Part shown: in pieces, positions 10,791-64,000 of the stretch | Position numbering within the stretch: the first letter of the stretch is position 1 | Layout of the letters: each line of letters opens with the position of its first letter | Origin: Rhodosorus marinus CCMP1338 | Lineage: Eukaryota > Plantae > Rhodophyta | DNA length: 64,000 bases | Reading direction: 5' to 3' | NCBI GenBank assembly: GCA_029953675.1 | Contig: JAMWBK010000011.1 | Location: 930,001-994,000, forward strand | Translations under genes and position numbers: made by a program | Notes under the pieces: generated by a model | The model's input: only the letters and a program-made list of their open reading frames with translations | The model's database searches: none | Told to the model about the DNA's origin: nothing

Positions 10791-10902
10791 TCTTGTTCGT
10801 TAAAAGGCTGGCTTTGTTTTATGTACTAGTTGAAGTTGTGGTGTTACCGTTCCTCTGTGTTCAGCTAAGCTTTTCCTAGTTCTACATTTCTCTATTTGCA
10901 TC

Positions 10903-18100: not shown

Positions 18101-18267
18101 GGTGGGGGGCTTTATCCTGACTACACATTAACAGCACGGGTATATAAGTATGTACAGCTGAAGATTTCTAGTGCGTTTGTTTTCTTGGCGGAGGGAGTGA
18201 TGAAACTGCGGAACTTGAAAGCCCACGTTTAGAGAACGTCTTGGTAGGAATTTTCTGTGGATTCGAT

Positions 18268-18777
18268 ATGGACAATTTGGAACTTAGTATTGACCTCGAC
18301 GGTTTATTAGGACTCGAGGAGTTGTCTGTAACTTCCTGGGTTTCAGATATGGACTCTGGCGGTCATCAGCTCGGTGGGGGGGGTACGATTTTGGGCTCAG
18401 CACCAGACTGCGGCTTGGTGGTTGAGCCAATTGATCTGGACGACAAGCTAGATGTTGCGGATCAGCTGTGGGAGGGAAAGGAAGGTGTAACCTGCTTCAG
18501 CCCTGGGATTTTTTTTTCAATCGCGACCCCGAGGCCACTGAAGGAAGTCGCAGCTGAGACCAGGCCCGTCTTGAAGAAAAAGCGCACGTACAAGGAGGCC
18601 TCGTGTCCGGTGTGTGGAACTGTGTTCTTCAGGAGGTACGAGATGGTGCGCCATCTCAAAGCGACACACTTGAACATTAGACCGCATCAATGTGGACTGT
18701 GCCCGAACACGTTCTCCAGAAAATCTCACCTGCAATCGCACATGAAGCGGATCCACCGACAGCCGACCAAGGCATAG
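18268..18777 (+). CDS. C2H2 zinc-finger protein (two fingers), paralogue of the 14.6-kb gene
   Basis: CPVCGTVFFRRYEMVRHLKATH-LNIRPHQ-CGLCPNTFSRKSHLQSHMKRIH; acidic N-terminus; TATATAAG at 18141. Confidence 0.88.
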   Translation: MDNLELSIDLDGLLGLEELSVTSWVSDMDSGGHQLGGGGTILGSAPDCGLVVEPIDLDDKLDVADQLWEGKEGVTCFSPGIFFSIATPRPLKEVAAETRPVLKKKRTYKEASCPVCGTVFFRRYEMVRHLKATHLNIRPHQCGLCPNTFSRKSHLQSHMKRIHRQPTKA

Positions 18778-22777: not shown

Positions 22778-25700
22778 CAAACAAACCTGTCACTTTTTCA
22801 GATGCCGTAGACAGGGCAGATCAGTTTGTCTGATCCAAAACTACCCTAAACAGAGCGAGCTCCAGCGAGGCTAGATGGACCACTCGCCAACCTCCACAGG
22901 GTTTTAGAATTGCAGCAAAAATACTATCAGACGAGTCTTCACCTTTGGAGCTGTGCTTGGTGCTGAGCAGGAATACCCCCGATCCGTACCAGCACTGTCA
23001 TCAGCCCCCAATTCGAGGGAATGTGTCCCATTAGCTTCGTGACGCTCGCAAAAGCCACGAAAGTACGAACGTAATTCTAGTACGTGTACTAGTATATTGA
23101 TTACCGCTTGATCGTACGATACTTCGTTTACAGTTCGAGCAAACCGGTCAAGCGAGCATTGCGCAGCTGGGTCCACTGGAGGAAAGCTGAGAGGTCGTCA
23201 CGGGTGCGCTAGTGAATTCGCCTTTCACCGAGACATGTCAAGCAAGAAAGAGCAAGCGAGCAACGCCCAGTGGGGTCCGCTGAAAGCGAGTTTCAAGACC
23301 ATCAGGACCGCTTGCAAGAATTCACTAAATTCACAACCCAAATTTATTATTTAAAAACAAAGAGTTTTCGGCACTGTCAACATTGTGCCGTGCCCACACA
23401 CAGTTCGGGCGAAAGTACTGGAAATAAGGGGGCAAAGCCAGTCCAAGGCCGGTGCAAATCAGGCAGAAAACGATGTGGACCATGATGTAAGATTCACGCA
23501 ATGGTGGGAAACTCAGTCTAACGAAACCCTACCAATCTGGTTTGGATTGTTGTTGAGCTACAACTACCAGCACGTTCAAGGCGAGTCGACTTGAGAAAGG
23601 GACCATTTTATTCAAAAAAAACACGAGAGCTGCAAGCAGCCGTGGAAACAGGCGCTTCATTCGGCACAGTGGAAGAAGGTCGTTTTCTCGTTACCAAACC
23701 AGCAATTATCCTATGACTGCCCTTACGCAAAACTCGGGACCACACGGCCCGAGCGCAGCCATCAATTCCTCGAAATTGACACGGGATAGTGACTTTGAGG
23801 TGCTGTGCAAAGACTAGAAATGACGGGCAGCCCGACATGACGATCAATGATGGCCGCTCTAGGGTGGCGCGAATCCGAATATGAGGCGATATCATGTCCC
23901 ATCCCTACCGGACAAAGTTCCCCCTAGAAACGAGCAGCTCATCAAAAATATGTAACAAACGAAATCGCAATCCCGTCCGAGCACCTCTGGGCCTCCAACC
24001 TTCTGCCGGAGAACTTCGCCATCGAAACCCGAGCCACGCGTCGAAAAGATTTCTTTACTTATTTTCATCGTTTTTACAAAGAATCCCGTCCATATTGGCA
24101 TGTCCCGCAGGAACCCAAAAAACAGAGCAAATTCGACTGAAAACAACAAAGTTAGCGTTCTGAGAATCCATTGAAACAGCTGGCTTGGAGAGTTTCTTCG
24201 CATCTCAGTTACACCTCAATTCTCTCAAAAACAAACGCAAAACAATATCCAGATACACCAGGATTAGCCCAACTCCAATCAATATGATCGTTAAACTACT
24301 TCTTAATATTTATTAATTCATTATCATACGGAAACACTGTTTGCATTGGTTATTTAGATCTTATCTCATCTATTAACGAAAGATAATTTGAAGATAGTCT
24401 TCACTAATAACCAATTATAAACCTTAGCTGAACTTCACTGAACTAACCACGATGCAGGAACTCCAAAAACGTGGGCAAGGTAAAAAACACAGCACCCTAA
24501 ATACGGAACTGATCTCCATTGGCCAATTCAGCCAGCACCGGCAAAAAACTATTTGCTATTCATCCACAAATCAATTCTATCCCAAAGAACATACATTTCC
24601 CCCCCACGAGCACGTCCAGACATGGTGAATACTAACCGATTCTACCTCGAAAGCCTCCATTTTCTACTCCAAAACAAAAACAATCGCAGCCAGCATTCAG
24701 TCCAGTCGAAAACTCAACGCTAATGACTGAATGTCAGTCAAGACATCGTTTCCCGTTTGCGTGTGCATTGCGTTTCGGGTCATCCTCGATATGGCCGCAT
24801 AAATATATCCAGAAATTGGTTGCGGCGTACTTGCTCTTCCTACTAAAAAGATCGCTTTCCTTCTGCGTTTGACCAGTAGCAACGTAGGCCCCTTTCTCCT
24901 TCCCCGTTTAGGGCTGGATTGCAAGATGTCCGGAAAATAGAAAAGCCGAAGAAAAACGATGAGACGGCTTCTTCTTTTCGTTGGAGGAGAAAGGAGAGGG
25001 TTGTGCTACTTCCGCATTTCTTCATGCTGTCCGAAGCAGGGACGTGCGAAAACAAGGTAGGAGGAATATATATAATTTATGTGATAAAATTCCAACGTTA
25101 AGAGGTGGGAGCCCGTAAAGATTTGATCAAGGCGAGGGTTTTGACCCCTTTTTTCTACCCGCCATTGCTTTCTTGGAATTGAGGTGTTCGTGTAGTCGTT
25201 GAGAGCAAAATTTGCACAGCTTTTTTTTTTTGTTTATTTTTGTGAATGGATTCTGGACCTGTTGGTTGAATCTTGTTTATGCTGTCAGAAGTATATTTGT
25301 TTTTTGGTTGTTTTATGATGGATTTGTTGGGTGCTTGTTCACATTGTAGGGATGACGGGCTGTGCGTGCTGAGCGGATATGCGGATATTGGGTGAGTTGG
25401 GGATTGTGCAGGTTATAAGAGTGGTGGCTGGTGGTGTGGGAGTATAGAGGGGAGAGAGTTGGATGTGGAGCAAAGAAAGGACAAGGATAAGCAGAAGCAG
25501 AAGAAGAGGTAAAGCGGGTTTTTGGTTGAATAGAGGTGATGGAGACAACGGTGAACTTTGAGGATCAGGAATATATCAGGCTATCAGGGAAGGCCTTGGT
25601 CTCTGCTGTTGCAGAAGCTTTGGAGCGAGCCTGTACTGATGAAGAGCTTGTAGAATCGACTATTCCGAAATGCTTTTTCGGCAGGAAGCAGTCGATCTCG

Positions 25701-26945
25701 TTGGAGTCTTACGTGCAAAGGCTGTATGAGTTTATGGATTGCTCGGATGTGGTGTTCATTACGGCGCTAGTTTATTTGGACAGGATTGAGATCGCGAATA
25801 GGAACAACAGATTGACGCAGGAGAATGTCCACAGGCTGTTTGCGACAGCTGTGCTTCTTGCGGTAAAGTATCAGGATGATGAGATATTTGACAACTCCTA
25901 CTACGCAATGGTGTTTGGATTCTCAAACCTGGCGGAGATCAACCGTTTCGAGGCGACTTTGCTGTGCTTCTTGGACTTCCGTGTGAGTGTGAGTGAGAAG
26001 GAGTACTTGTTCTACAAGACGCACCTGATCCAGTCATCCGCGCAAACTCCGACTCAATCGGAATTCGTGCTGTCAAGCGTTCCAGTGGCGTCCGCGGCCT
26101 AAGGACACTATCTTTATTTCTATATATATATGAATATTTTTATATGTCATTTGAACAGTTGTAAATAGCTTTCACGCATATTTTAAGTAACTAAAACAAA
26201 CCAAACAATTGAAACAACTCATACTCGCAAGCAAATCAGCGGAAATTGGTTCTACCATCGCAGCCCTCGATGTAAGCAGTGGATTTGCTCCACAGAGTCT
26301 CCACGCTGACGCCTTGATAAGAAGAAACCATCGCATCGATGGCATTCGAGCAACCCGAGTACGTTTTTTCTTGGAGCAGCAGCTTGAGCAAAGTCTGAGG
26401 GTTGATCAACGAGTCACAGTTTCGGACTGCACAGAACGTACGAGACTCTTCAGCAACTCCACTCCGAAACCACCTTGAGCAATAAATCACTTCTTCAGTG
26501 ACACATCGCGATGAACCCAAGCTTGGGTCGATCACGACCACTGTCAGGAGGCTTCTCGAAGCTCTCTCGCTCACTCGTACTTACTTCGGACTCTTCCGAA
26601 TTACGAAACTAAAGTCCTTTCCCCTTCAAACAGTACGCAGCAGAAACATTCACAAGGCCTTTGGGCTACGTCGCCAAGTGAGGTCTGGGGAAGATCTGCA
26701 AAGCTGTCAGCACCACATCGGGTCTCCAGATATTATTCAACACCAGAGCACACGGAAGAAAACAAATGGTCTGTATTTCAGAAATCGACACGTCTTGGTA
26801 AAACTCTCCTTGTAAAACTGTCTCGGCTCAGTGATTGGTTATTATAGCACTACTTGACTCAATTAACCACGCTAATGCAGTACTGATCCATATTTGGAGG
26901 TGTACTGCGTATCTATTGGATATCGAGAAATGTTAAGGATAAAAC
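22778..26945. repeat. Tandem segmental duplication, unit B (has ~310 bp extra at 26552-26862)
   Basis: Aligns to unit A; ends in a homologue of 22700-22775 at 26863-26940. Confidence 0.88.
25539..26102 (+). CDS. P/U-type (PHO80-like) cyclin, copy B
   Basis: Same length as copy A, with five amino-acid differences. Confidence 0.92.
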   Translation: METTVNFEDQEYIRLSGKALVSAVAEALERACTDEELVESTIPKCFFGRKQSISLESYVQRLYEFMDCSDVVFITALVYLDRIEIANRNNRLTQENVHRLFATAVLLAVKYQDDEIFDNSYYAMVFGFSNLAEINRFEATLLCFLDFRVSVSEKEYLFYKTHLIQSSAQTPTQSEFVLSSVPVASAA

Positions 26946-27097
26946 GGAGATGTATTGGCTAATTAGGAGCCAAACGCAGAGGACTATATTAGACAGCTCT
27001 AGGCCGAACTGGGGGAGGTAGGAGAAGAGCAAAGCAACGAATTCTTGGTGCAAGTGACATCAGACTTTACGGGATTTTGTTCAGGGTGTCTTGGCTT

Positions 27098-27230
27098 TGG
27101 GAGTCTTTCTGCTGGCGAATGGCGAAAATTGGAGGGAGAGTCTTTCGGGTAGCGACTGCGGGAAAATTGGTGAGACAGTCTTTCGGGTAGCGACTGGCGA
27201 AAACTTGGCGGGAGAGAGTCTTTAGGGAAG
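27098..27230. repeat. Degenerate minisatellite, ~37-40-bp unit, about 3.5 copies
   Basis: The core (G/C)AGTCTTT recurs at 27101, 27138, 27176 and 27216; GAAAA(T/C)TGG follows in the first three units. Confidence 0.75.
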
Positions 27231-27872
27231 AAATGGAGGGCGCAAATTGTTGGGAGTCCTTTTTTAGTTCTTTAAGGGATTATCAATTTAAGCGTTAATA
27301 TACAGTAGACATAAAGTACAGAATTGGCGATTTATTTATTTAAGAAGAAACACATAAAGTATACAATACAGAAAATAGCTTTGTACACGCCCATTCTTTG
27401 GTAGGGGGCCGTTGTTTCATCCAACCAATCATCGATTCATCTAACCCAAGTCAATCCAATAACCGCTACGTTTCTCCCTAATCTCTCATTAAACAAGTTT
27501 TAAGAAATATAATTGGATATTAGGATATTCCATACGAGAATATAATCCAATTGTGGAGTTTAATTGGTTATCAGCTATTAATATTTACAGAATCGAACAT
27601 AAATCAATATTTATCCTTTTTAATTGGATGTATACAGTTTTGCAACATCTTTATAAACCAATGAATAATATTGAAATATTATAAATAGCTTATTTAACCA
27701 ATGAAATACTTCAGTTTAGCCAGGGGTTGTAATTTACGGAATGAGAACTTGGGAGCAAAATGTTACGGTTTGCAAGGACAGAGGCGCTGACTGTGATCGT
27801 GATGGAGCAGAGGGATGGGAGTGAGGCAAGTCATGGGAGTAGAACTCATTACTGAGGGGTTTTAAAACTAGG

Positions 27873-29234
27873 ATGGAGCCATATGGCAATGACCATCTGT
27901 TTCACGACTCTACTCTTGCCTTTTCCTCTGATGTGGAGAAGTGGCTTCGAGATCAGGGGTCGTCTGAAGGCGACCTGAGTCAGCGGCGAGACGTTTTTCG
28001 GACTCGTCTGGCGACCAAGCGATGTGTTGTTGTAGCTGGATACGAAGCATGCAGAGATGCGCTTGAGGAGAAGGAGTTTGTTGCATCTCAAGCTTACAAT
28101 GAGCTGCTTTCTGGTGTCATGGGTGAGACCACTCTCCTTACGATGGAGGAAGACGGTGAGCTGCTGAAAGCGACCAAGATGTTGCTCCACGGGACGATTT
28201 TGAAGTCAATGGATCATATCGTATTCACGTCACTGATTCCCAAACTGGAAGAGCGACTAGATAAGCTGTCAGGAAAACCCGTGAACCTGTATGAAGTCGT
28301 TCGTGACTGTATAGCGGACTCAATCGTCTCCGAGGTTATCGGACCGCACCATATCGACGAACGCCAGCAGCTAGATTTGCTCCTCAAGGACCACTTTCGC
28401 GCTGCTTCGAGGCCACCAGTGAAGCTCAAGCTGGGCAAGATTTGGATGTCAGCTTTTCAGCGCGGAATTGAGGCTCGGGATAAGCTGCTCGCAAAATTCG
28501 AGGCTGTAGTCAAGAACTTTGAACCTTCCGAGGGCGAGTCCTGTTCTGCTGATTGTTCTTCCCTGTTATGTGCGATCTTCACGGAGAACAACAATTGGAA
28601 GATGGATAACAAGACGGCACTCAGCACCAAGCACCTCGCGGGGATTCTGTTAGTGCTCAGCAACACGATTATTCCGAAAACGGTGGCGACGCTCGTCGCC
28701 TCGACCTGCGCGTCGATCACACTGGACATCTCGCTGTTCGAGAAGGCCCACAACGAGGCAAAGTCGTGCCAAGTCGACATCAAGAGCTGCGCTGGGATGC
28801 AGGAAAACTGCTCCGAAACCATACGGCTCTGCACCAAAGAAACGCTGCGACTTTGGCCCGCGCTCATCGCGGCTCCGAGAAAGTGCAACAATGACGTCAT
28901 CTTCCGAGGCTATAAGATCCCAAAAGGCCGCTATGTGATCATCATGTTGTTGGCAGGCAACCGGGACCCAGCTTCGTACGGTCCTTCGGCGAACGAGTTC
29001 TCGGTGAAGAGATGGAAGGTGACTCCCCCACCTCCGGAGCCGTTGAGCTTTGGGGGTGGACCCCGTTCCTGCTCGGGACGCGACCTTGCCGAGAAGATCA
29101 GCGTCGCCGTCATCTGCAAGCTGCTTCAGAAATACTCGTCGTGGCAGCTCAAGAAGGGCAGCAATCCTCTCGACTACAAATGGTTTCCAGTTTCTGCGCA
29201 TCGAGAACCCGTCAAATTTGTCTTCACACCTTGA
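27873..29234 (+). CDS. Cytochrome P450 with an atypical I-helix
   Basis: K-helix KETLRLWP (ExxR) and heme motif FGGGPRSCSG. The N-terminus may be incomplete (possible upstream exon). Confidence 0.92.
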   Translation: MEPYGNDHLFHDSTLAFSSDVEKWLRDQGSSEGDLSQRRDVFRTRLATKRCVVVAGYEACRDALEEKEFVASQAYNELLSGVMGETTLLTMEEDGELLKATKMLLHGTILKSMDHIVFTSLIPKLEERLDKLSGKPVNLYEVVRDCIADSIVSEVIGPHHIDERQQLDLLLKDHFRAASRPPVKLKLGKIWMSAFQRGIEARDKLLAKFEAVVKNFEPSEGESCSADCSSLLCAIFTENNNWKMDNKTALSTKHLAGILLVLSNTIIPKTVATLVASTCASITLDISLFEKAHNEAKSCQVDIKSCAGMQENCSETIRLCTKETLRLWPALIAAPRKCNNDVIFRGYKIPKGRYVIIMLLAGNRDPASYGPSANEFSVKRWKVTPPPPEPLSFGGGPRSCSGRDLAEKISVAVICKLLQKYSSWQLKKGSNPLDYKWFPVSAHREPVKFVFTP

Positions 29235-49887: not shown

Positions 49888-52051
49888 GGGATGTAAGAAG
49901 AACTCGTGTCAATTGGTGTCCTCGTGGGTATAGAAAAAAGCCTTTTCGAGGACTAAAACAAGGCCTATATCGTCAATTGATCTGAGCTCTGGCCTAAAAA
50001 GGGTGCTTCAAAAGACGCCTTACCAGCCCCCACGGCATGTTGTAAATCAAGAGAGTGGTCAAATCAATCGCACGGATGCACACCATGGTCACGTAGAATC
50101 CAACGTACGCGCTCTGAAGAACTATCGCGACGGTTGTTATTGAAATCATGTACAGCTTTGGGAGCCAAGCAACACGAGCCAGAAAAAAATAGCAAACCAG
50201 GCGTTTTCAGTTCACCGTTTCCAAGCATTCCAATCCCTGCTCCCCTAGTCTTCTTCCTCCCCCGTGGAAAGCTTTGACGATCTTACCAAGTCAAGCACGA
50301 ATAGGAGGAAAGGATACGCGGCATACCTTGGGGCACGCCGTCGTAGAAGCCCAGTAAGTACCTTGCGGTGAATCCATTCCTCAAACCCGCCAAGAGATGA
50401 CCGAACACGCTCCATTCTTTTCTGAAATAACCTGAACTAACCCAGAACCACACCAGCCTCGGCCGTTCAAGGACCCATGGGTTAAGCCCCGTTTTTGGCA
50501 GCCGGGACAAAGCCAGCTGAGTATTCAAAGGGACCAAAGCAACACCAAAAAAAACGAAAAGGCAGGCGCCCGCTCTTCCTATCCCATTCCCAAACCTCTC
50601 TCCCGAGCATCTGCAATCCCGTCCAGAGACGATCTAAACACCCCCAAAAACCCGAAAAACACCCACCCCCTCAGAAACCCAGGAAAATCCCGATGTCAGC
50701 AAAATCCTTTCCCCTAAAAACAATTCCGTTCTACTCCCCCCTAAGAAAGGTCCGCTTCCTTCAACAAAAACGTTCAGCAGAAAACAAAAACAAACAAATG
50801 CTGGAAAACAAAAAAAAACTCCCCCCCCCTCTCCACGCAGCCCTTGACTGGTAGGGTTGTCATCAAATGTCCAATAAAGGATACTGGACGTGTCTGATAA
50901 AAAGAGATACGAATATTATGGAATTAACGAAGAAAAATTGATTGTCTAGGGAACGCAAATATTTTAAAAATATGTCTGATTTAAGGTCATTTATTACTCA
51001 TTTTTTAGCCGATCAGTACTTACGGGTATGGATTTATCTTCGTTTATAGGATATTATGTGTACTAAGTTATGTACTAAATTGTTTGTTTTGGACGAAAAC
51101 GCTTCTCTGTCATTAACGAGAGAATCTCTGGCCTCCTACTAAAGTTTCTGTTCAAGACAGCGCTCTTGGCATTTCTTGGCATATTCGGGTTTGAGCGCTA
51201 CTTTGCTGTTGGGGGCGCACGTCATCAGCGCCTCCCTTGACGCTCCTCAGGGTAGATAGGCTCTGAACAACCCAGATCATCAATGTTGGCAAAAAAGCAT
51301 GACCGTCCAATGACAGATAATTCAAGTGCTTTGCCCAGTCTTGGCGACGTTGAGGAGGACGTAGCCTGTTGAGTCTTCAAACCATTGCAACCCGAGCTTA
51401 AATCCGACCGGTGACGGATCGACGTGACGGTGATGTCGGTTTGCTCCATGGATCTCTGTCCCTTGCTCTTATCGTCCCGAACCCTATCGGGCAGGACAGG
51501 GAAAACTTAGGACTTGCCTGGGACCAGAAATCTCCACCATCGTGACCGTTCTCGCTGAATTACGAAAACTAAAATGGGAGACCTCTTCCAGGGTAGGGTT
51601 TAGTAAAAACGTCTTCGTGAAGAACTCATTAGCTCTTTACATCAAACTCGCACTTCTTCGTATAGCCCGGATCGCCTTTCCCACTTACCAACACCGTCCG
51701 CATGCACAGGCTACTCTCGTGACAACGTGTCAGCAAAAAGTGTATAGACTTCTGCGCGCAGGAAAATTTAAAGGTAGATAAGTGTCATATTACTTGGGGC
51801 CAATTTTAATAAATTAAGTTCATAAATCTGTTAATTGTTGGGGTGACTATAAGATCGGTTTTGATGGAGTGTAAAGCAGTAGTATTGTCTTTGTCGAGGG
51901 CGAGGACTACGTGTTCGGGAACGGTATTAGAAGCGTAGTCGGGAGAGGAGAGAGACTGGGATTGATGAGGGGGCTTGGCTGAAGGTAGCCGAGCTTATGA
52001 TTCCCTCTGAACATACGCCTGTGAAGAGAAAGAGGGTGGGTGAGAAGAGTT

Positions 52052-52990
52052 ATGGCGTCGAAGAGGACGATTGCTGTATGGATGTCCGTTTTCCTGTGGA
52101 TAGGACTGGTGGATGCGGCGAAGAAATGTCCGCCGGGTAGGGCGAAGAGTTTTCTTATGGGATTCATGGGACATACAGGATCGACTGCGACGATGTCGAT
52201 GTTACATAAGCACAGCCACCTGGACGTTGCGTGGCCATTGGTTGAGCCGATGATGAATCACAATGCGACGACGGGATGTCTGTGGACGCGAATGTTCTTC
52301 GAGGAGCCGAGAACTACCATTCCGGGGTTCAAGCTTCGTCCGCACAAAGTTATTGACGACAAGGAGCCGTGGACGAAGCTCATTGACGACTACGAGGTGA
52401 GGTTCATTCGGATGATCCGAGAGAACCTTTTCAAAGCTGGAATCGGGCTGTATTCTGTCCGAGTTTTGGAAGACAAGGCCGCCGTGCAGGGGCTTATGAA
52501 AGGTGAGGAGGATCATTGTCAGGTTCACCCGGAGTCCTGCTACTTTGATGTGGAGAGCGTGAAGCTCCTAGCTTCCCTTATGCATACCATCCATGAAGGG
52601 AACGAATCGGTGGAGAATCTCGCACGCGAGATGAACTGGTCTTGCGTTCTGGATATCACCTACGAAGAATTCCAGAAGAATGGTGAAAAGCTGATGAAGC
52701 GCGTGGAGAACTTTCTGGGCATTCCGTACGAGGGTCACCGGCCCGATTTCCAAAAAGCCCTCTCGGACAATCCCTGTGAGGTGGTGCTGAACTATCAGGA
52801 CATCTGCGGATACTTCTACGATTGCCCTCTGTTCCGGCCGTTTGTGGAGGATGAAGATGCCGGCTGTGTGTGTGTGAACAAGAAGGGCAAGCACGACCCT
52901 GTGCTGTGTGATCATGAACTATTGAAGGAGGCGATTAGACAAGACCCGGACGAGGATCTGAAAACGATTGGAGACACTCGAACCAATTGA
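52052..52990 (+). CDS. Sulfotransferase-like protein (Stf0/NodH-type P-loop fold) with an N-terminal signal
   Basis: FLMGFMGHTGSTATMSMLHKHSHL..EP resembles the 5'-PSB region (RSGST..L..HP..E); FIRMIRENLF resembles the 3'-PB strand; LDITYEEF..VENFLGI is typical; Cys-rich C-terminus. Confidence 0.68.
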   Translation: MASKRTIAVWMSVFLWIGLVDAAKKCPPGRAKSFLMGFMGHTGSTATMSMLHKHSHLDVAWPLVEPMMNHNATTGCLWTRMFFEEPRTTIPGFKLRPHKVIDDKEPWTKLIDDYEVRFIRMIRENLFKAGIGLYSVRVLEDKAAVQGLMKGEEDHCQVHPESCYFDVESVKLLASLMHTIHEGNESVENLAREMNWSCVLDITYEEFQKNGEKLMKRVENFLGIPYEGHRPDFQKALSDNPCEVVLNYQDICGYFYDCPLFRPFVEDEDAGCVCVNKKGKHDPVLCDHELLKEAIRQDPDEDLKTIGDTRTN

Positions 52991-54206: not shown

Positions 54207-56363
54207 ATGACTAATACTCTACAGAAATACAATGTTATTAGGACCTATGATGGGGTCTATATTGATTCTCGTGTGTGCGTAGCAGATGAGGATGGTCTGG
54301 TGAAGGATGTAGGGGGGCTTGCTCCTCCTGAGAATCGTGTAACAGACCAGTTCGAGATTTTCTGTGTCTTCGGATACATTTCTGGGTAGGGTAGCTCCTC
54401 AGTTTTTCGTGAGAGTTTCATGCTTTTGGGAAGATTCAAGCGTTTTTGGCTAAGGGCGTGCGGATGTTGTGGGTTACAAAGGCTGTTGATCCTGGTGACC
54501 GGTGTAGAGAGCTTGGGCAGCCTAAACGGCCACCAAGTCTTGAAAGTCACTGAATGGAGGACTATAAACGTCACAAGCAAAGTTGAGTACTGCGAGAACG
54601 CCGTGAGGTCCTTCTTCACGCTGGATGGGATGTACTTTTCGCCCACGACAGACCTCTCCAAGAGACGATCGCCTTCCGGCTCAACGTTTTCTGAGGTTCA
54701 AAAGATGGCTTTCTGTTGGAACCATGCGGCGTCATCTTCGCTTGTCAAGGCAGGGTAAGGAGCCTCCATCCAGTTCCCGTTTGATTCATTACTGTCTTAA
54801 ACGACTTACATTGGATCCGATTCAGGTTTAGTGAATACGTCCGTCCGATGGTCTTCGGATTCGTATCGATAACCTCAGTGAGAGATATCAAACTGGCGCT
54901 CGTGTCCAGGCGCAGGACTGACCGAGCTGGCTTCCGGTTCACGACGAGGGGTATGGATTCCGATGGTGCCGTTGCGATCGCGACAGAGACTGAAGCGTTT
55001 GTTGAACGGGCTGGGGTGGTTACATCCTTCACAACAATCCGAGGATCCATACCTCTCTTTTGGATGCAGTTTCCTCTTCAAATGTACGTTGCAAAGGCAC
55101 TGTGCCGGGAGTCTGTAACTATACTCACGAGAAAGGGGTTCCACTATGCGTTTGCTTAGGAGGAAACCGAAGACGATGATTCACACTGGAAGCAGAGAAG
55201 AGAGAGCGGCGTTTTCTACTCACTTTCAGAAGCTTTCTGAGGAATACGGCTCTCGGGTGGTGATCTTGTCGACCGTCAATGATACTGGCGCGGAGGGCAT
55301 TCTGAATCTCAAGTACTCGAGGGAGGCGAGGAGGAGCGAGAACGTCCAGCTGTTCAAGCATTTCCGCTTTTTCTCAGTGAGCGACAGGAGTCTGAACATA
55401 GAGCTACTTGGCCGCGGCTTTTTGCTGAGAACATTGCGCCTGTTTCTACGTAGGGTGAGACGGCGCCAGTAACGCAGAGGCTCGACGACCTCTACAAAGA
55501 CCTCAAGGGCGTGTTGAGCGCGCAGGGACTCACTCAGAGGACAGACCATGAGATCGTGACGAGAAAGGCACAGTCTGGTGTGCTTCGGATCAACTGCATT
55601 GACTGCTGCGATCGGTCGAACGTTGCTCAGGCGCATTTGGTCAATTCCGTAATAAGAGAGTTTGTGTTGGATGATCTGAATCCCGATGAATGTGAGGAGG
55701 ATCGGCTGGAAAGAGCTCTTCGGAATATCTGATCCGTCCTTGATTCCTAAACGAGCTGATACGAATCCCACGTTTACCTCGTAGGGAACGAATTGGAGGT
55801 CGACCTGAGGGAGTTGTGGCATGAGAACGGAAAGCAGATCTCCGAGCAGTACGCAGGGGGAGCCGCGCTACAAGGCGATCTAACGCGATATGGAATGAGA
55901 ACGTTTAGCGGGCGCTGTCAGGACCTAAAGAGCCTCGTGAACCGCGACCTCAGCAACAGGTACAAGCATGGAACGCTCCAAGATGGCCTGGACCTAATCC
56001 TCGGAGTTGTCAAGGAGCATGATCCAATTCACCCGGACAGCCGGATTCGCCCGTACTTCCCCAGGATCGTGATCATCATTTTCTTGGTCGCGTTCGTGTG
56101 CAAGAATCTCAATTTATCCAGAGGACTTTCAGTGGTAAGCGAAGAGGCTCCCAAAGTCTGCAGCCACAATTCCGTTCCGAGCCAAGAACGGTGACTCACG
56201 AACCGTCTGCAAACGACAGGCTTTCAAGCTCCTGTCCGCGATGTCTTTCGGTGGTCTTCTCCTCGTCATGTCGATGCCAGAGGCATGGACGCTGAAATCA
56301 GCATTAGGCGGTACGAAAGCAAGAGTTCATCCGAATGCATCGACTTTCCTGCCTCTGGAGTGA
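54207..56363 (+). CDS. SAC1: Sac1-type phosphoinositide phosphatase (multi-exon; 3' end uncertain)
   Basis: LVSRRRTDRAGFRFTTRGMDSDGAVA..ETE; SFTTIRGSIPLFWMQ; catalytic RINCIDCCDRSNVAQ (CX5R); ENGKQISEQYAG; C-terminal hydrophobic segments. Confidence 0.9.
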
Positions 56364-56662: not shown

Positions 56663-59461
56663 CTAATTCAGCTCTGGATCAGTGAGCGGTCCGCTAAACG
56701 GCAGCAGCGTACAAAAGTCAACGAGACATGCGCTGTTTCCTTTGTTGTACAAGAGGACCTCGTTCGCGATTCCGGTGGCGTCAAAGACCATTTCCTTGTA
56801 GCCCCAATCTCCATACGCAATCGGAGTGACCGGCCCGAAGGAGTTCTTGCATATCCTGTTGTCCTTGTGAAGGATCTCCATGGTTAGCGGTCCCGATCCG
56901 CGGACGTAGCAGCGCATTCTGTACCGCTCGCCTTTGCTCAGCCACACCGTCTGACTTGCGACGGTCGCTGATGGATAGAGGTACATAGCCCGTACATTTC
57001 GCAGCGGCTGGAGTCCAGAAAACTCAAGAGGGCCACTAACTGTCCATCGGAAATTCCCCTGCGGCTCAAAACTCGGGTTCTTGAGCTTCTGACCTGACCC
57101 TAGCAGTACCGCCGGAGGGTCCCACGCCGGGAGATCCGATGGTAGGTTGTAAGCCCCAGAGCCCAAGTAAGGTGGAATCCCGTCAGTTGCAGGGTAGAGG
57201 GAACAGTCATCTGCCCAGACACCACCGCTCTGAGCTGCAGGATCACCACCATCGTCTCGCTCCAGAACGATCTCGTAGTCAGCCGAAGAAAGGATCTCAA
57301 AGTCAACTTCCTGGTTCTTCCAGTCCGAGTTGTGCACATCAGAGGCATCTCCCAGATTCTCCGCATAGAGCATCGAATCCCTCCAGATCGAGAGCCGGAT
57401 GCTCCCCTTCACGTAACAGTGCAATCTGTAAATCTGGTCAGGGCTTAAAGAGACGAGCTGAACCGCCTTTGACCCCTCCTGCGTGAAGCTGAGCGCCCGC
57501 GTTCCACTGAAACTTTCAGATGCCGACGTCTCGGCTCCGTCCGAGAGCGCCCAAAGCCCGGCGTCCTCATCGAAGCTGGGGTCTTCCAAAAGTGAGTCGT
57601 ACTCAGGATCCGTCAGTGGTCCCGAGAAGGGGAACAGAGTGCAAAAGTCGACAGTGCACTCGCTATTACCGATGTTGTACAGAGATATATCCTGCGCTAT
57701 CTTCGTCGCGTCAAATATTATATCCTTGTACCCCCAATCGCCCCTTCCAATTAGCGTCACCGCCCCGAACGAGTTCTTAGATATCCTCTCTCCCTGATAA
57801 GAAACCTCCATGGTCAGTGACCCCCGTCCACGCACATAACACCTGAGCCTGTACCTCTCGTTCTGCTCCAAATACACCAACTGCGTTGCAACAGTGTTCG
57901 GGTAAACAAACATTGAGCGCTCGCCTATCAACGGGTCAACTTCAGTGAACTTGAGATCACCGCTTACAGTCCACCGCAAGTCGGATTGGTGCTCAAAGCT
58001 CGGATTCTTGGTCTCTCCTCCAGCAGCCAAAAGCTCAGCTGGCGGATCCCACGGCGAAAGATCTGCCAAGTTGTAAGCACCGGAGCCGACGTAAGGAGGG
58101 ATCCCGTCAGCTGCAGCATAGAGGGAGCACTCATCTATCCAGACCCCGTTCCTCTGGCGGCTCGGAACACCCCCATTGTCTCGCACAAAGGTCAGCTCGT
58201 ACTCGCCGGATTCTTCGATCATCACGTCGACTTCTTGATGGTTCCATTCGGAATTCGGTACCGGAAACGTATCTCCAAAGTTCTCTGCGTACAAGATCGA
58301 ATCCTTCCATAGCGTAAAGTGGATGCTCCCTGTTGAGTAGCAGTGCCACCTGTAGATATTTCCTCGGTCCAAATAGACGCGTTGAACGGCTGTTGATCCC
58401 TCCTGGGCGAGTCGAAGGCCCCGCTCTCCCGTAAATGTTCTAAATCCAAGTTTACTCGCGCCATTGGAGAACAACCACGGCTCGGTGCCTTGCTCAAAAC
58501 TAGGGTTTTGCACAAGTTGCTCATTTTCAGGATCTGTGAGCGGTCCATTGTACTCGAACATTGTGCAGAAGTCGACGATGCACTCGCTGTCCCCGTCGTT
58601 GTAGAGCAAAACGTCCATCGCGATCTTCGGGGCGACGAAGACCATATCCTTGTAGCCCCACGATCCATAGTCTATCGGCGTCACAGGCCCGTACGAGTTC
58701 CTAGACACCTTTTCTCCATTGAAGGAGACCTCCATAGTCAGCGACCCAGGCCCAGTGACATAGCAACGCATTCTATACGTATCTTCCGTGTCCAAGAAAA
58801 CGGCTTGCTTTAGGACCGTGCTTGGGTGGACAACCATGGCTCGCCTTCCTTCCAATCTGTCTTGTCCGGTCAACTGCAGAGGACCGGTGACATCCCACCG
58901 AAATTCCGAGGTCGAAAACTCAAAGCTCGGGTTTCTAATGACTCCGTTATCGCCCAAAAGCTCGGCTGGTGGATCCCACGCAGGAGTTGGCTCCGGTGGG
59001 TAGTTGACAGATACCGAGCCGACGTAGGGCGGAATGTTGGCAGCAGCGTAAAGGGAGCACTCATCTGCTCGAACCCCTGAGCTCTGGAGTCCTCGAGTAC
59101 CACCATTGTCTCTCTCGATGACAACGTCGTATTCACCCGAGGCATGGATCAGAAAGTCGAACTCTTGATTCTTCCACCGGTTGTTTGGCCCTGGAAAAGT
59201 GTTCCTGAGACTGTCACCGAAGATGGTTGAGTCATCCGATATCGAGAAGCGGATGCTCCCCCTCACATAGCAGTGCAGCCTGTACACATTGTTTTCCCTG
59301 AGGTAGACGCGTTGAACGGCCTTGGACCCTTCCCGACCGAGCCTGAGGCGATTATCTCCCGTGAAAGCCTTGGAACTGCTCTGGAATTCGGCCCCGTCCA
59401 GCAAAGACCACGCTCCGTCTTGTTCCTCGAAGCTGGGGTCCTTCAAGAGCTGCTCTGCGTT
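56663..59461 (-). repeat. Three ~930-bp intragenic tandem units, each encoding two CBM4/CBM16-like modules (A-B)
   Basis: Units 59461-58526, 58525-57602 and 57601-56663. Each reads (D/N)PSF(E/D)..CY..D(E/D)CSLY.A..IPPY.GS..WDPPA.LL..NPSFE..RCYV..YKD/EM/I.F..VDFCT....GPLTDPE. Confidence 0.92.
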
Positions 59462-61480
59462 GGGTGGAGACCTGTGCGGGTAGTCCTCGGGATTGGTTAG
59501 CGTTCCACACGGCGTACCGTCGTTTGTCCCACCGCCCAGGAGGCAGCACGCTCCGCCCTTGCATTGATCAACTTCCAAAACTACGCTGCTCAGCCAGCCG
59601 CCATCGTCAGAGTACTGCACCTTAATCTCGGGAGATGATCCCAGATCTTCCAGACGGTAGGGAATGACAAAAGTGCCAAAGTACCTGGAGTCATAGCTCC
59701 GCTTTGGGCCAGCCATTCTCTCGTCATAGTCGGCAATCGGTTCTGTGGCATCGTTTACCCACACCTTGGGCTTGGCATCGTCCTTGGGCCTTCTGGAGTG
59801 CGCGATACGGATGTATCCGACACCGTTCGAACTCTGTGGAATGCCGGTGAACTGAAATGTGTAGATCTCGTTCGAGTCAACGGGCACGGGATAGTCCCGC
59901 GCTTGGCCAGTGCTGTCCAAAATCTCGGCCATGTAGTGCCTTGACCGCTCCACCTTGCGAAGTTCACGTGCAGGTGCCGCGAAGGTAACCGCGAGAACGT
60001 GCATCGCCTCCGGCTCAATCTGAACGCTTTCTGGAACCGAGCTCAGGGTCGAGTTGCTCCACCTGACCGTTCCTGCTCGTGCGATACTCTGAGCTATGTC
60101 TTCCGCAGTCGGTTCGCCCTCCTCCAGCCAGAGCTTTCTTTCAACAACGCTCTCTACCACGCCAGATCCGAATGGAAGGTTCAGATCGACCTGGGCCGCA
60201 CCACCCTCAGTTGCCAAGTTCTGAAGGAGAATGTAGGCGCGATTCGAGTTCGCCACAGAGAGGACCTTGACATATGGATCGTCGCTGTAGGAGTAGACAA
60301 AGTCTCCTTCGACGCCTTTAAAGAGTTCTAAATAATACATGAGGTCCGTCCACTCGAGCACGTCGTCTCCTCCTCCATTCGTAAGCGACCACGGATATGG
60401 ATGCGTCAAACCGTTTCGGCTATCGGTCGGATCCAAAGTTAGAAAGTTAATAAACTTGAGGACATTGTCATGGACTCTCATTGTACTCATGAACGCCTTG
60501 AACGCGTCCGCCATTATAATAAAGTCCCTTCCTCCAGTCGGCGGACGAGATTCCAGCGTGACCTTCGAGAACCATGAGCCGTGATACGCGCCTGTCTCAG
60601 TTATCATGTACTTGATGGGCTTGCCATCGTCAGATGTCTTCGTAGTATAGGTCTCCAATAGATCGAGATTGGCGTCCTGTACGGCACCTCCCGACGAGTA
60701 GATATGCTGCGAGATGAAGTCGACACAGCCTGCACTGCGGGCAGAGTCGATAAAGTTCTTCATACGTGTTTGCCATCGACTAAAATTGGCAAGATGTGGT
60801 CTCGCGCTGTTTGCTCCCGGCCCTCCGGCGAGCATGTCAGGATTCGCCGCCTTGATATCCCTACACATTTGGCCGCAAATGTTTCCGATCCTGGTGACGA
60901 CGGAGGACTCGGACTCCCCTGGATACCGTCTGAGCATCTTGTACTCTCCCATTGGCTCATTGAAACACTCCGAGTATCGTGGCTTTGGAAATCCTTCCTG
61001 AGCGTTGAAGAATCTGCTGAAGTACTCCCCAGAGAACGCAGCGGCATCGGAGATAAGTTGATCGCTGTGCTGGAACTCGAGTAACTTTTCTGCCGTGTCG
61101 GTAGCGACTCGCTCTCCGCTCATCAATCTCTTCCTGAGCGGGTCGCAGCCCTCGCAATTAATCTGGTTAAGTCTTTGTGCTCCTTCCTCCTCGAGTCCAT
61201 CCACGCCGTCCGGGAAGCCCTGTGATCCTGAGAAAGGACCCTCATTCGATGACCTTGTAAACATAACGTCCAGGTCCACCGCGAGGTACTCCATCATAGC
61301 CTGAGCATTCTTCGGCGATGCGAGGTTTCCATGAGCGTTGACGAATCGGTGCCGATCGAACACTTGCTCTCCGTTGGTTATCAAAGTCGTTTGGAAATCA
61401 ACAGTTACAACCGCACCCTTGACACTCAGCACCAGCACCAATAACGCCAGCACCACCTTGCTCGAAGCCATCGACTTCAT
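56663..61480 (-). CDS. Secreted GH86-like beta-porphyranase/beta-agarase with six C-terminal CBM-like modules (~1600 aa, intronless)
   Basis: Signal peptide. Motifs recalled from the bacterial GH86 porphyranase BpGH86A: FDRHRFVNAH, ECFNEP (acid/base Glu, 60956-60958), WQTRMKNFID, ITETG (nucleophile Glu, 60596-60598), YYLELFKGVEG, SDDGGWLSSVVLEV. Six NPSFE-type beta-sandwich modules follow. Start at 61480 or 61471. Confidence 0.88.
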   Translation of the reverse strand: MKSMASSKVVLALLVLVLSVKGAVVTVDFQTTLITNGEQVFDRHRFVNAHGNLASPKNAQAMMEYLAVDLDVMFTRSSNEGPFSGSQGFPDGVDGLEEEGAQRLNQINCEGCDPLRKRLMSGERVATDTAEKLLEFQHSDQLISDAAAFSGEYFSRFFNAQEGFPKPRYSECFNEPMGEYKMLRRYPGESESSVVTRIGNICGQMCRDIKAANPDMLAGGPGANSARPHLANFSRWQTRMKNFIDSARSAGCVDFISQHIYSSGGAVQDANLDLLETYTTKTSDDGKPIKYMITETGAYHGSWFSKVTLESRPPTGGRDFIIMADAFKAFMSTMRVHDNVLKFINFLTLDPTDSRNGLTHPYPWSLTNGGGDDVLEWTDLMYYLELFKGVEGDFVYSYSDDPYVKVLSVANSNRAYILLQNLATEGGAAQVDLNLPFGSGVVESVVERKLWLEEGEPTAEDIAQSIARAGTVRWSNSTLSSVPESVQIEPEAMHVLAVTFAAPARELRKVERSRHYMAEILDSTGQARDYPVPVDSNEIYTFQFTGIPQSSNGVGYIRIAHSRRPKDDAKPKVWVNDATEPIADYDERMAGPKRSYDSRYFGTFVIPYRLEDLGSSPEIKVQYSDDGGWLSSVVLEVDQCKGGACCLLGGGTNDGTPCGTLTNPEDYPHRSPPNAEQLLKDPSFEEQDGAWSLLDGAEFQSSSKAFTGDNRLRLGREGSKAVQRVYLRENNVYRLHCYVRGSIRFSISDDSTIFGDSLRNTFPGPNNRWKNQEFDFLIHASGEYDVVIERDNGGTRGLQSSGVRADECSLYAAANIPPYVGSVSVNYPPEPTPAWDPPAELLGDNGVIRNPSFEFSTSEFRWDVTGPLQLTGQDRLEGRRAMVVHPSTVLKQAVFLDTEDTYRMRCYVTGPGSLTMEVSFNGEKVSRNSYGPVTPIDYGSWGYKDMVFVAPKIAMDVLLYNDGDSECIVDFCTMFEYNGPLTDPENEQLVQNPSFEQGTEPWLFSNGASKLGFRTFTGERGLRLAQEGSTAVQRVYLDRGNIYRWHCYSTGSIHFTLWKDSILYAENFGDTFPVPNSEWNHQEVDVMIEESGEYELTFVRDNGGVPSRQRNGVWIDECSLYAAADGIPPYVGSGAYNLADLSPWDPPAELLAAGGETKNPSFEHQSDLRWTVSGDLKFTEVDPLIGERSMFVYPNTVATQLVYLEQNERYRLRCYVRGRGSLTMEVSYQGERISKNSFGAVTLIGRGDWGYKDIIFDATKIAQDISLYNIGNSECTVDFCTLFPFSGPLTDPEYDSLLEDPSFDEDAGLWALSDGAETSASESFSGTRALSFTQEGSKAVQLVSLSPDQIYRLHCYVKGSIRLSIWRDSMLYAENLGDASDVHNSDWKNQEVDFEILSSADYEIVLERDDGGDPAAQSGGVWADDCSLYPATDGIPPYLGSGAYNLPSDLPAWDPPAVLLGSGQKLKNPSFEPQGNFRWTVSGPLEFSGLQPLRNVRAMYLYPSATVASQTVWLSKGERYRMRCYVRGSGPLTMEILHKDNRICKNSFGPVTPIAYGDWGYKEMVFDATGIANEVLLYNKGNSACLVDFCTLLPFSGPLTDPELN

Positions 61481-64000
61481 CCTCGGAATTAGGGGACAAC
61501 CTGTCTTCATCATTATTGTAGAATCCAATTTTTCACCTCCTCAAAGTGCTTGTCATTTTCCAATCCGGAATGCGATCTTCAAGCTAAGCGACCTTCATTC
61601 TCCTTCTGCTTCTCTACGTTCCGCTCTTCTAAGGCTGATCTTGCGCAACTCCCCTAGCTTTATAATGCCTCGACCTCATCGGAATGCGAATCTCCTCTTT
61701 GGAGGTTCTTGCGGACAATCCGCACAAGTTTAGGGAGGAGAGGGGTGGGGAGGGGAGGGGGTGAAGAGGGAACACCATATGAAAGTTCGGTTCTGTTCTG
61801 TCATTGCTGCATTTTTTTACCGCGCTTAAACCTGGATACGGTTCGACGAGCTTATTTTCTTTCCGTGTTCGGCAGTTAGGAACCTAGTAGGCGGATTCGA
61901 GTTGTGTGACATCGGCGTACAAAAACACTGTAGAGCCCTCGATACGGAACAAGAAAAACTAAAAATAACGACGATCACCTAAGAAAGAAAAAATTCAACG
62001 CCTTCCAAATATAACTCATCCGATTAGGAATAGAGTGAAAATCAATTAAATTGAAGCTTAAAAAAGCGGCCTGCCCTATCACTGTCGACTTCGGATGGGA
62101 TCCTTCTGCACACATTTGCACTGACATTAAACCATTCGTTCGACATTCTCCGTGTTTTCATACGAATCAAACTTTTTGACTCCAGACTTGAGCTGCCGTT
62201 GGCCGGGGTGCAGACGGATGAACAGTGATGGTATTTTGACGAAATGTGTGCTCTTCTTCAAGGCCTGGCAACCCCGTGCTCAATTGGTTGGTAAAACTAA
62301 CAGTAAGTGCAACGGCTGCCCGTTGAGCGATACAAAAAATCATTTTGAGTTTTGGAAATTTTTGGCCAAAAAATGCAAGTATTCCGTAGATTCATCTATT
62401 ATTAATTGAAAGTAGTGCTGCGGTTAAATACGATGAACACCACCATGGAGCCGGATGCTCATTCCCATCCGAGGTGCGCTCCGAAATCAGCATTCGCGTC
62501 AGGCTCCATTCTCGTTTTTGGAAGGCAGGGTTCACCGGGCCTTTGTTCATTCGGTTCCATTTCCTCTTCCCCCCCGTCGAGAGTGTTTGAGGTAGCCACA
62601 GAAATGGCCAACTCACATTTCTTCGAGCATCATCTTGAAGTCATTCAGCTATCCATACACCGAAAGTGTCCACCCTATCAAAATATCATCTGTGAGAAAA
62701 TCTAAGTCTCATGGAGGGGGAAGCTGCGTTGAAACCCCTACCCTCCAGCAAAGAAGAACATGCTCCCGGGGGGGGGGTAATCCATACCTATTGAGCCCCA
62801 TAACCAACACCACACCATCAAATATTTATTTATCATAATTCAATTTGTCACTCACCACAAAGAGATTTTTCACATCCAGCATCGCATAGAATAAGCCTTC
62901 ACTCCCAAATTTCCGGGGAGGAGCTCGCTCGATCGATCGGATGCAACGGATCCGGTTAAAGGCCACTTCCCACAAAACCGTTGAGGTTCTCTAAGCGAAG
63001 TCAAGTGAAAAGTGGCTACTATTCTAATAATACCAACATGACGGCCGTACTCAGTTTTTACTTAATAACCAATTACATAAAAAACAGAGAGGTCCAGTCT
63101 CACAAGTTAATTTAATAGGATTATTTGTTACTTGGTAAAAAATTAGATAGATTGATATGGATTTTAGGAAATAAACAACCAAATACCAGGGAAATGTAAA
63201 GTTCTTGTCCCGAGAGGAAAAAAAGTTATTTTATTTAGGGAGAACCACGTCAACGGCGTTAAACATCTGATGTTGTACTATTGGATAGTTAGATGATGAT
63301 GAACTATCAATTGCTTTTTGGTATTGGGTTTTTGGGCCAAATTGCCCTAAAAAATGCTCGCTTTTTTCTTCTGTCGAAATGGTTTGTTATCTATTTTATT
63401 GTATTTAAAGGATTTTTAGTGGCTATTAAAAACCCCATTTAGGGCAATTCTTGAAGGCAGGTTTTTGCAGCGATTTTGGAAAATGAACGCAGATAAATTG
63501 AGCGCATCAAAATGGGACCAGCCCACTATGGAAAAAAATAACTGCCAACTCCGATTATTTAGGAGCGCAAAGTTGAGATTGAATATTCGAATATATTTCG
63601 GACTTCCTCTTTTATTGGTTGTTCGTAGCTGAAATGCAGAATATTTATAACCGTTTTCCCGCCTATCAATTGGGTCGTTGCAACGCGTGGACAATAAGGA
63701 CATTGAAAAAACTTTATAAATTAAACATACATTTTCAGATATGTCAGATGAAAATTTGTACGTTAGTTACTTCAATGGAAGAAACCGGTGTTTCTTGTTT
63801 GCGGCATTGTACTGTACCGTGGAACACGGCTCAACCTTCTTAGCGAGGGACTAGGGGGAAGAGTTCTTCTTTTCCGAGATTTTGGTGCCAAGACCGCGCA
63901 AAAGTCCGTGGACTGTTGCGCCTAAGGTGGCGAAAATAAGTAGAAAAGGTAAGCAGCACGTTAGACGGGAGTCCTCCTTGTTATGGTGGTTTTCGAGCAG

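Follow-up and report, generated by a model that had tools for sequence, protein, structure and literature searches.

The literature covered here assigns GH86 (glycoside hydrolase family 86) to marine and gut bacteria that feed on the galactans of red algae. The described members closest to the gene presented here are the beta-porphyranase BpGH86A of Bacteroides plebeius (4AW7), with its subfamily in Polaribacter, Flammeovirga, Aquimarina and others, and, from the other bacterial subfamily, the Bacteroides uniformis beta-agarase BuGH86 (5TA0/5TA1/5TA5) together with Aga86A_Wa (8H97). The choice between agarose and porphyran has been related to residues of the -2/-3 subsites, F77/H114/S326 in BpGH86A and T82/Q138/Met in BuGH86, and E322 of BuGH86, changed to Gln in 5ta0, is the nucleophile (PMC5849685). 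Among red-algal galactanases, CcGH16-3 of Chondrus crispus is a demonstrated beta-porphyranase, and the red-algal GH16 family has been interpreted as the product of an old gene transfer from bacteria with later duplication (PMC9771727). Here we describe a GH86 gene of the red alga Rhodosorus marinus CCMP1338, located at ~986.7-991.5 kb of contig JAMWBK010000011.1 (1,442,050 bp), within a window of 64,000 nucleotides (the whole stretch of DNA analysed, ~930-994 kb of the contig; Table 1).

In a phmmer search against all PDB chains, only GH86 entries rose above noise, among them 5ta1 (BuGH86, E 3.8e-18), 8h97 (Aga86A_Wa, 3.1e-17) and 4aw7 (BpGH86A, 3.6e-14). The PDB matches span residues 146-637 of the window protein, and the complete GH86 module extends over residues ~23-655. 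An AlphaFold2 (AF2) model of this module, built on a 50-sequence alignment, reached a mean predicted local distance difference test score (pLDDT) of 92.5 and a predicted template modelling score (pTM) of 0.92, and consists of a barrel and two immunoglobulin (Ig)-like beta-sandwiches. When the model was compared with the PDB by Foldseek, the top seven matches were all GH86 and covered all three solved folds at template modelling (TM) scores of 0.74-0.85, and the next families, GH30 and GH39 of clan GH-A, reached at most 0.45 by query length. Across an alignment of 50 algal and bacterial sequences, neither catalytic residue, E175 or E295, varies, and 13 further columns are likewise invariant. 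The pair is kept in 17/17 sequences of the algal clan described below, and all algal members retain GH86 Pfam domains. By every feature of membership that could be tested, the window protein is a GH86 member with an intact catalytic pair. This agrees with an earlier note on this DNA, which had recognised a GH86 module with both catalytic Glu and a likeness to BpGH86A; the GH86-specific Pfam domains and the GH86 entries at the top of both PDB comparisons speak against another GH family.

The module is part of a much longer gene, found as a single uninterrupted minus-strand open reading frame (ORF), 56663..61528. The start codon is ambiguous, with in-frame ATGs at 61513, 61510, 61480 and 61471; residues are counted here from the ATG at 61480, which gives 1605 residues. 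The gene encodes, in this order, a signal peptide, the GH86 module, a Cys-rich linker and six modules resembling carbohydrate-binding modules (CBMs) in the arrangement (A-B)x3, so that the GH86 module takes up only the first 40% of the 1605 codons. Signal peptide and GH86 module together occupy 59516-61480. The extent given in the earlier note, 59500-61480, was consequently too short for the gene, which ends at 56663, and the C-terminal ~950 residues of CBM-like modules had been missed. The predicted signal peptide of that note was recovered, as the N-terminus reads MKSMASSK-VVLALLVLVLSV-KG, followed by AVVTVDF, and by eye shows a charged n-region, a hydrophobic h-region and a c-region of small residues. 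The mature end AVVTVDF aligns with the mature start of the bacterial enzymes, and an equivalent hydrophobic N-terminus precedes the conserved V.VDF in all algal paralogues.

In comparison with BpGH86A, the window protein has the same three-domain fold (TM 0.74/0.84) and the same NEP acid/base and nucleophile Glu, and the position of S326, the base of the sulfate pocket, is occupied on the algal side by a small hydroxyl residue, Thr. However, the two proteins are only ~22-25% identical, the window protein carries a eukaryotic signal peptide, the Cys-rich linker and six algal-specific CBM-like modules, and its gene lies outside any polysaccharide utilisation locus. The best fold matches are BuGH86 and Aga86A_Wa (TM 0.79-0.85, E 1e-51 to 5e-46), and the catalytic pair of BuGH86 is aligned, with E322 corresponding to E295; yet the identity over the structural alignment is 18-20%, the equivalents of Q138 and of the pocket-filling Met are lost, and both enzymes are members of the bacterial subfamily that does not contain BpGH86A. 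The red-algal GH16 enzymes resemble the algal GH86 proteins in being a nuclear galactanase family with relatives in marine bacteria, for which a function in the matrix of the alga itself has been proposed, but the GH16 beta-jelly roll and the GH86 TIM barrel are unrelated in fold and family, and GH16 is found in Florideophyceae/Bangiophyceae, with activity shown, whereas algal GH86 is found in Stylonematophyceae and known from sequence. The GH16 study (PMC9771727) does not mention GH86. The window protein differs from the characterised GH86 members in host domain, depth of divergence, altered negative subsites, the Cys-rich linker and the algal-specific module array.

Table 1. Positions of the GH86 gene, its parts and related features (window coordinates, except for the last two rows, which are positions within locus L086 of the same contig)
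Feature	Position	Strand	Basis
Whole coding sequence, 1605 codons + stop, intron-less	56663..61480	-	ORF list, 5'-end sequence
Predicted secretory signal peptide, aa 1-22 (MKSMASSKVVLALLVLVLSVKG)	61415..61480	-	hydrophobic core, Kyte-Doolittle window mean up to 3.35
GH86 (beta/alpha)8 barrel, aa ~23-389	60314..61414	-	AF2 secondary structure; Foldseek to 5ta1/8h97/4aw7; phmmer alignment
Glu175, acid/base, NEP motif (FNEPMG)	60956..60958	-	codon GAG; column E173 of alignment A1; aligned to BuGH86 and BpGH86A
Glu295, nucleophile, ITETG (MITETG)	60596..60598	-	column E293 of alignments A1 and A3; aligns with BuGH86 E322
First Ig-like beta-sandwich, Pfam Porphyrn_cat_1, aa 406-519	59924..60265	-	26.6 bits against a cut-off of 27, borderline; beta strands in model
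Second beta-sandwich, Pfam BPA_C, aa 541-637	59570..59860	-	34.7 bits against a cut-off of 26.2
Cys-rich linker, aa 640-672 (C640, C645, C646, C658; 'QCKGGACCLLGG..PCG')	59465..59563	-	Cys positions; conserved in algal paralogues
CBM-like module A1, aa 675-834	58979..59458	-	self-HMM scan, repeat anchors
CBM-like module B1, aa 835-985	58526..58978	-	self-HMM scan, repeat anchors
CBM-like module A2, aa 986-1143	58052..58525	-	self-HMM scan, repeat anchors, AF2 di-module model, Foldseek
CBM-like module B2, aa 1144-1293	57602..58051	-	best stretch of Pfam CBM_4_9 match; self-HMM, model
CBM-like module A3, aa 1294-1452	57125..57601	-	self-HMM scan, repeat anchors
CBM-like module B3, aa 1453-1605	56666..57124	-	self-HMM scan, repeat anchors
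SAC1-like phosphoinositide phosphatase gene, several exons (context only)	54420-56194	+	Syja_N pieces, ORF-wise Pfam scan
GH86 gene of locus L086, first	6687-11894	+	
GH86 gene of locus L086, second	18564-12790	-	

The GH86 gene lies in the algal nuclear genome. An exact match of the window's P450 ORF places the window on contig JAMWBK010000011.1 of the R. marinus CCMP1338 assembly GCA_029953675.1, which combines Oxford Nanopore (ONT) and PacBio HiFi reads in 13 large contigs (PMC10250338). In the window, the SAC1-like gene is convergent with the GH86 gene, with ~470 bp between the two stop codons. Its Syja_N/SacI pieces lie at profile positions 14-117, 152-230 and 227-287, in consecutive order yet in different frames, so the gene has introns; a regular expression for the canonical SAC motif found no match because the CX5R-type motif is here the variant NCIDCCDRSN, in the ORF 55511-55732. 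The other genes of the window are eukaryotic as well (four astacin-C2-EGF genes, C2H2 zinc-finger ORFs, two PHO80-type cyclins, a cytochrome P450, a 1139-residue pentatricopeptide repeat (PPR) protein, a pseudouridine synthase and a sulfotransferase-like ORF). The GH86 gene itself, with a GC content of 0.54, a third-position value (GC3) of 0.62-0.63 and a relative synonymous codon usage (RSCU) correlation of r 0.75 with the other window ORFs, falls within their range. A bacterial contamination or a chimeric contig, in which a GH86 gene of an associated bacterium had been mis-joined to algal DNA, could be suspected from the otherwise bacterial family and from the lack of introns in the gene. 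We regard this as vanishingly improbable, since the gene is flanked on either side by eukaryotic genes within a long-read contig of 1.44 Mb and has host-like codon usage, five further GH86 loci lie between eukaryotic genes on three Mb-sized contigs, transcripts of the orthologue and of paralogues occur in MMETSP eukaryotic transcriptomes from other strains, and the identity to any bacterial protein does not exceed ~30%. The eukaryotic nuclear context claimed in the earlier note, including the intron-bearing SAC1 neighbour, thus stands.

When 1.84 billion representative proteins were scanned with HMMER, 273 relatives were obtained, the best 150 of which were listed, ~40 of them with source or organism. 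Among the matches listed, the closest relatives of the window protein are all algal. In Rhodosorus there are at least seven distinct transcribed paralogues, and the genome proteins KAJ8900832, KAJ8904124, KAJ8904075 and KAJ8901447 belong to the family; one GH86 protein was found in Bangiopsis sp. CCMP1999, and a few more come from SRA assemblies, including four members of the algal clan. The Rhodosorus genome holds at least six GH86 loci: the window gene, two loci on contig 6, one on contig 13 and, at a site ~140 kb beyond the window gene on the same contig 11 (L086), a convergent pair of complete genes that both carry module arrays. A capture as pictured in the earlier note, if taken as single and recent, does not agree with these numbers of loci and transcribed paralogues, nor with a family common to Bangiopsis; since the family is shared with that genus, any transfer predates the split of these Stylonematophyceae. 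Furthermore, the protein of Bangiopsis shows a weak grouping with several of the paralogues from Rhodosorus, apart from the core clade that holds the window gene, which suggests that duplication began before the two genera separated.

Deposited gene models for the algal family are poor, their catalytic modules being truncated or split. The model P0018 and its neighbour, both at L086, begin too far downstream, so that the catalytic N-terminus with most of the barrel is missing from them, and the model P0010 (locus L004) probably contains a spurious intron. An exact database look-up of the window product with each of the four candidate starts found no matching record, so the deposited model of the window gene, if there is one, differs from the ORF. 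The named GH86 relatives are called agarase or porphyranase-domain proteins by their sources, and some Rhodosorus proteins bear the automatic UniProt name 'Beta-porphyranase A C-terminal domain-containing protein'. The literature found on GH86 or porphyranase in connection with Rhodosorus, Porphyridium, Rhodophyta or red algae consisted of bacterial studies only, and the R. marinus genome paper (PMC10250338) does not mention GH86. As far as we can tell, algal GH86 sequences are visible in databases and apparently undescribed in the literature.

In regard to the origin of the family, the named relatives outside the algal clan are all marine bacteria. Bacterial GH86 matches were found in at least 182 GTDB species genomes, and the 80 listed are mostly from marine Flavobacteriia and Cytophagia, with others from Verrucomicrobiota, Planctomycetota and Gammaproteobacteria, many of them agarolytic. 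Their identity to the algal proteins is 22-30%. All named eukaryotic carriers, among the ~40 named of the best 150 of the 273 relatives, are Rhodosorus or Bangiopsis; widespread, vertically inherited and already described eukaryotic orthologues did not appear among the named matches. Mainly because of this distribution, one ancient transfer from a marine bacterium to the ancestor of Rhodosorus and Bangiopsis appears likely. In neighbour-joining (NJ) trees based on Kimura distances with bootstrapping, the 17 algal sequences formed one clan with 100% bootstrap in two samplings. In the sampling with 145 representatives, this clan fell inside a 64-member group (98%) that includes Polaribacter, Marinoscillum, Saccharicrinis, Flammeovirga, Persicobacter and a Lentimonas metagenome-assembled genome (MAG), thus Bacteroidota and Verrucomicrobiota. 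When scored with subfamily hidden Markov models (HMMs), 17/17 algal sequences gained 40-90 bits more from the BpGH86A-like model than from that of the other subfamily, and a weak affinity of the algal clan to this Bacteroidota-rich subfamily may be read from the comparison.

Several features of the same data weaken the case for transfer from bacteria. The trees are unrooted NJ trees, and the attachment of the algal clan to the bacterial tree shifts with taxon sampling: with 80 named GTDB loci, the clan stood near the junction of the two bacterial subfamilies (split 82%). The midpoint root falls on the long algal stem. The algal scores against both subfamilies are below the cross-scores between the two bacterial subfamilies, and as the algal sequences thus lie beyond either subfamily's mutual distance, nesting and the direction of transfer are not proven. 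With ~40 of the 150 listed matches named, other eukaryotic carriers may also be missed. The midpoint root was set aside as a probable effect of the long algal branches. Two donor candidates, the Lentimonas MAG (support 0.26) and Saccharicrinis (0.44), appeared as weak sisters of the algal clan; neither is supported, and no donor phylum can be named. From the origin in bacterial consumers proposed by the earlier note, the marine bacterial nature of all named non-algal relatives is retained, while nesting in a bacterial phylum was not shown.

The depth of the algal clan, whose distance to either bacterial subfamily exceeds that between the two, the position of the midpoint root and the lack of a nameable donor lineage could alternatively be explained without any transfer from bacteria to algae, if GH86 was ancestral in red algae or eukaryotes and lost elsewhere, or if it arose in red algae and was passed on to the bacteria that consume them. 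We consider such a history unlikely. Among the named matches the eukaryotic carriers are confined to one class, whereas bacterial carriers represent at least four phyla. The long algal branches fit accelerated evolution after a transfer; all algal sequences lean to one bacterial subfamily, and the red-algal GH16 precedent also points to transfer.

The window gene has an orthologue among the MMETSP transcripts (P0160, transcript contig L005), from another strain named 'R. marinus', with 83% amino acid identity over 1425 residues. Its modules are likewise arranged as (A-B)x3, its C-terminus is the same, and the two sequences are collinear except for an 89-nt stretch present only in the transcript (L005 nt ~483-571). 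This stretch stands directly after the NEPMGEY codons, breaks the frame and is flanked by a 9-nt direct repeat, GGCGAATAT; it could be a retained GC...AG intron or an assembly artefact. Between the window gene and L005, the number of synonymous substitutions per site (dS, Nei-Gojobori) is ~0.55, and the ratio of nonsynonymous to synonymous rates (dN/dS) is 0.12 in the GH86 part and 0.19 in the CBM part. A related strain thus transcribes the gene, and purifying selection acts on all of it, GH86 part and CBM part alike. As a separate observation, orthologues between cultures named 'Rhodosorus marinus' (P0001 and P0002; the window gene and P0160) differ by 12-18% in protein sequence, with the same dS of ~0.55, and the strains under this name probably represent more than one species.

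Downstream of the GH86 module, the motif of the Cys-rich linker recurs in P0001-P0004, with the consensus 'EVDxCxxxxCC' in alignment A3. The remaining part of the protein is made of six modules of ~150 residues, of two alternating types, each of which starts with [ND]PSF[ED] and ends with a conserved Cys. The Pfam family CBM_4_9 (PF02018) matches the whole protein with 40 bits (cut-off 25.9), and some modules of paralogues exceed this cut-off on their own (P0008 40.8, P0016 33.8 and P0015 28.5 bits). An AF2 model of one A-B pair consists of two beta-sandwiches. Single-domain Foldseek matches are CBM16 (2zex, 2zey) and the porphyran-binding CBM 8xmz, at TM 0.68-0.71 by target length, and profile matches of the modules to CBM16 are weak (E ~0.01). 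The modules share with CBM_4_9/CBM16 and 8XMZ the opening signature N-P-S-F-E...W and the predicted beta-sandwich, but they are only 12-15% identical to these matches. Assignment to known CBMs is made less secure by the single modules of the window protein, which reach at most 17.7 bits (B2) for CBM_4_9, below the threshold, and by the middling pLDDT of the pair model, 72.7. The top Foldseek matches of the di-module were tandem CBM-like domains of Bacillus thuringiensis pesticidal proteins, which were read as a generic resemblance of tandem beta-sandwiches. In our data set the A and B modules were found only in algal GH86 proteins, where their count varies from 1 to at least 6. Based on the models and profiles, we infer that they are divergent CBM-type modules with a putative carbohydrate-binding function.

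At the -2/-3 subsites, one bacterial subfamily, mostly of Bacteroidota, has F/H/T and is porphyranase-like, and the other has T or N plus Q and is agarase-like. The window protein has Ser and Thr where BpGH86A has F77 and H114, in an N-terminal alignment that is uncertain at ~25% identity. In mapping these positions, the residue 'M396' of BuGH86, as printed, failed: in the PDB sequence, S326 of BpGH86A is matched by the Met at residue 369 (chain index 372). The 'M396' given in PMC5849685 for the residue filling the sulfate pocket is probably a transposition of digits for 369.

The explanation that we favour, with somewhat more confidence than doubt, is that the product of the gene is a modular endo-beta-galactanase of GH86, secreted and of the retaining type, derived from an old bacterial transfer and used on the alga's own sulfated galactan sheath. 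According to this explanation, the signal peptide would direct the protein into the secretory pathway, the E175/E295 pair would perform retaining hydrolysis of a beta-galactosidic bond, as expected from family membership, and the Cys-rich linker with the (A-B)x3 array would hold the enzyme on the polysaccharide. After a single transfer, the family would have diverged fast, duplicated and been fused to the algal-specific CBM-like modules. The most likely substrate would be the polysaccharide of the alga's own sheath, if this is cell-bound, rich in galactose and highly sulfated as in its class, and the role could be in loosening or turnover of the sheath during growth and division. Of the roles considered, this one seems the most likely, with about even chances of being correct. 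Use on the alga's own matrix is plausible because Stylonematophyceae hold a cell-bound, galactose-rich and highly sulfated polysaccharide. Their exopolysaccharide is cell-bound, with galactose at 31-87% in four of five strains; the bound polysaccharide contains 78% galactose in Bangiopsis and 19% in Chroodactylon ornatum, sulfate amounts to 18-29%, and an infrared (IR) band is compatible with 3,6-anhydrogalactose (PMC9031348). A sulfated galactan sheath in Chroodactylon was reported in an earlier study cited there.

Some points reduce the strength of this explanation. The -2/-3 residues fit neither the agarase nor the porphyranase type, and agarose or porphyran cannot be assumed as the substrate from the residues aligned; moreover, these positions differ between algal paralogues and are not conserved. 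Catalytic activity of the algal GH86 proteins is a prediction from sequence, and for the polysaccharide of Rhodosorus itself no characterisation was found in the literature covered.

Alternatively, the secreted enzyme could face outwards and digest the galactans of foreign red algae, or else exopolymers from bacteria or biofilms, in the service of nutrition, space or defence. Bacterial GH86 enzymes are catabolic, and a large, fast-evolving family with varied subsites and variable CBM arrays resembles the outcome of diversifying ecological pressure. Nevertheless, this possibility appears rather unlikely, though it deserves some weight, as polysaccharide feeding by Rhodosorus is not reported in the literature covered, the class makes abundant bound sulfated galactan itself, and none of the catabolic genes paired with bacterial GH86 (e.g. 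GH117, GH2, sulfatases) adjoins the gene, although no search was aimed at them. The attack on neighbours put forward in the earlier note as one of two possible uses found no specific support.

It is also conceivable that the fold was kept for another activity: the protein could chiefly join galactan chains again by transglycosylation, or serve in the wall by binding galactan without hydrolysing it. Retaining enzymes of clan GH-A can transglycosylate, the usual example of such activity being the plant GH16 XTH. Six CBM-like modules that outweigh the catalytic part, together with remodelled negative subsites, could point in the same direction. Against this, both Glu and the 13 family-invariant columns are kept and dN/dS is lowest in the catalytic module, which fits catalysis without distinguishing hydrolysis from transfer, and we give such a shift of function a slim chance.

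If the GH86 enzymes of these algae are active, red algae took wall-cutting enzymes from their bacterial consumers twice, once with GH16 and once with GH86, and the family would give access to the sheath polysaccharides of Stylonematophyceae, on which hardly any work exists; eukaryotic GH86 enzymes combined with CBM-like modules could also provide new specificities for sulfated galactans. This would be of interest to specialists in algal cell walls and carbohydrate-active enzymes (CAZymes), and involves no new principle. A broader proposal, possible though we would sooner doubt it than accept it, is that GH86 was taken up by Stylonematophyceae as a second bacterial galactanase family, unrelated to GH16 and acquired independently of its use in Florideophyceae/Bangiophyceae, to act on their own sheath, and then grew into a large family with new specificities at the subsites and with a new family of modules that bind galactan. 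In that case, the fine structure of agar-like or porphyran-like polymers in early-branching red algae could be read from these enzymes.

Other parts of the window hold features of their own. A plus-strand ORF of 316 codons with a hydrophobic N-terminus (52040-52990), 3.7 kb from the GH86 gene, has a weak match to Sulfotransfer_3 (E 3.7e-5, below the Pfam cut-off) and may encode a carbohydrate sulfotransferase; such a candidate would bear on a sulfated galactan. On the other side, the 2 kb upstream of the GH86 gene (62001-64000) have 41.6% G+C compared to the window mean of 49%, and contain no long ORF. Four tandem genes for astacin (M12A) metalloproteases with C2 and EGF parts occupy 293-12477 on the minus strand, an unusual array of secreted proteases for a red alga, and the fourth of them is split across two ORFs (10903-11634 and 11791-12477). 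At ~20440-28100 (plus strand) there is a tandem duplication of ~3.85 kb, with best blocks 92-94% identical and one 79% identical, and each copy contains a 188-codon ORF for a PHO80-type cyclin (21687-22253 and 25536-26102). Finally, C2H2 zinc-finger and cyclin genes are present both in the window (14573-15160 and 18241-18777, plus strand) and beside the GH86 paralogue P0011 on contig 6 (locus L003, 9778-10446 and 14310-14517), which may be a trace of segmental duplication.

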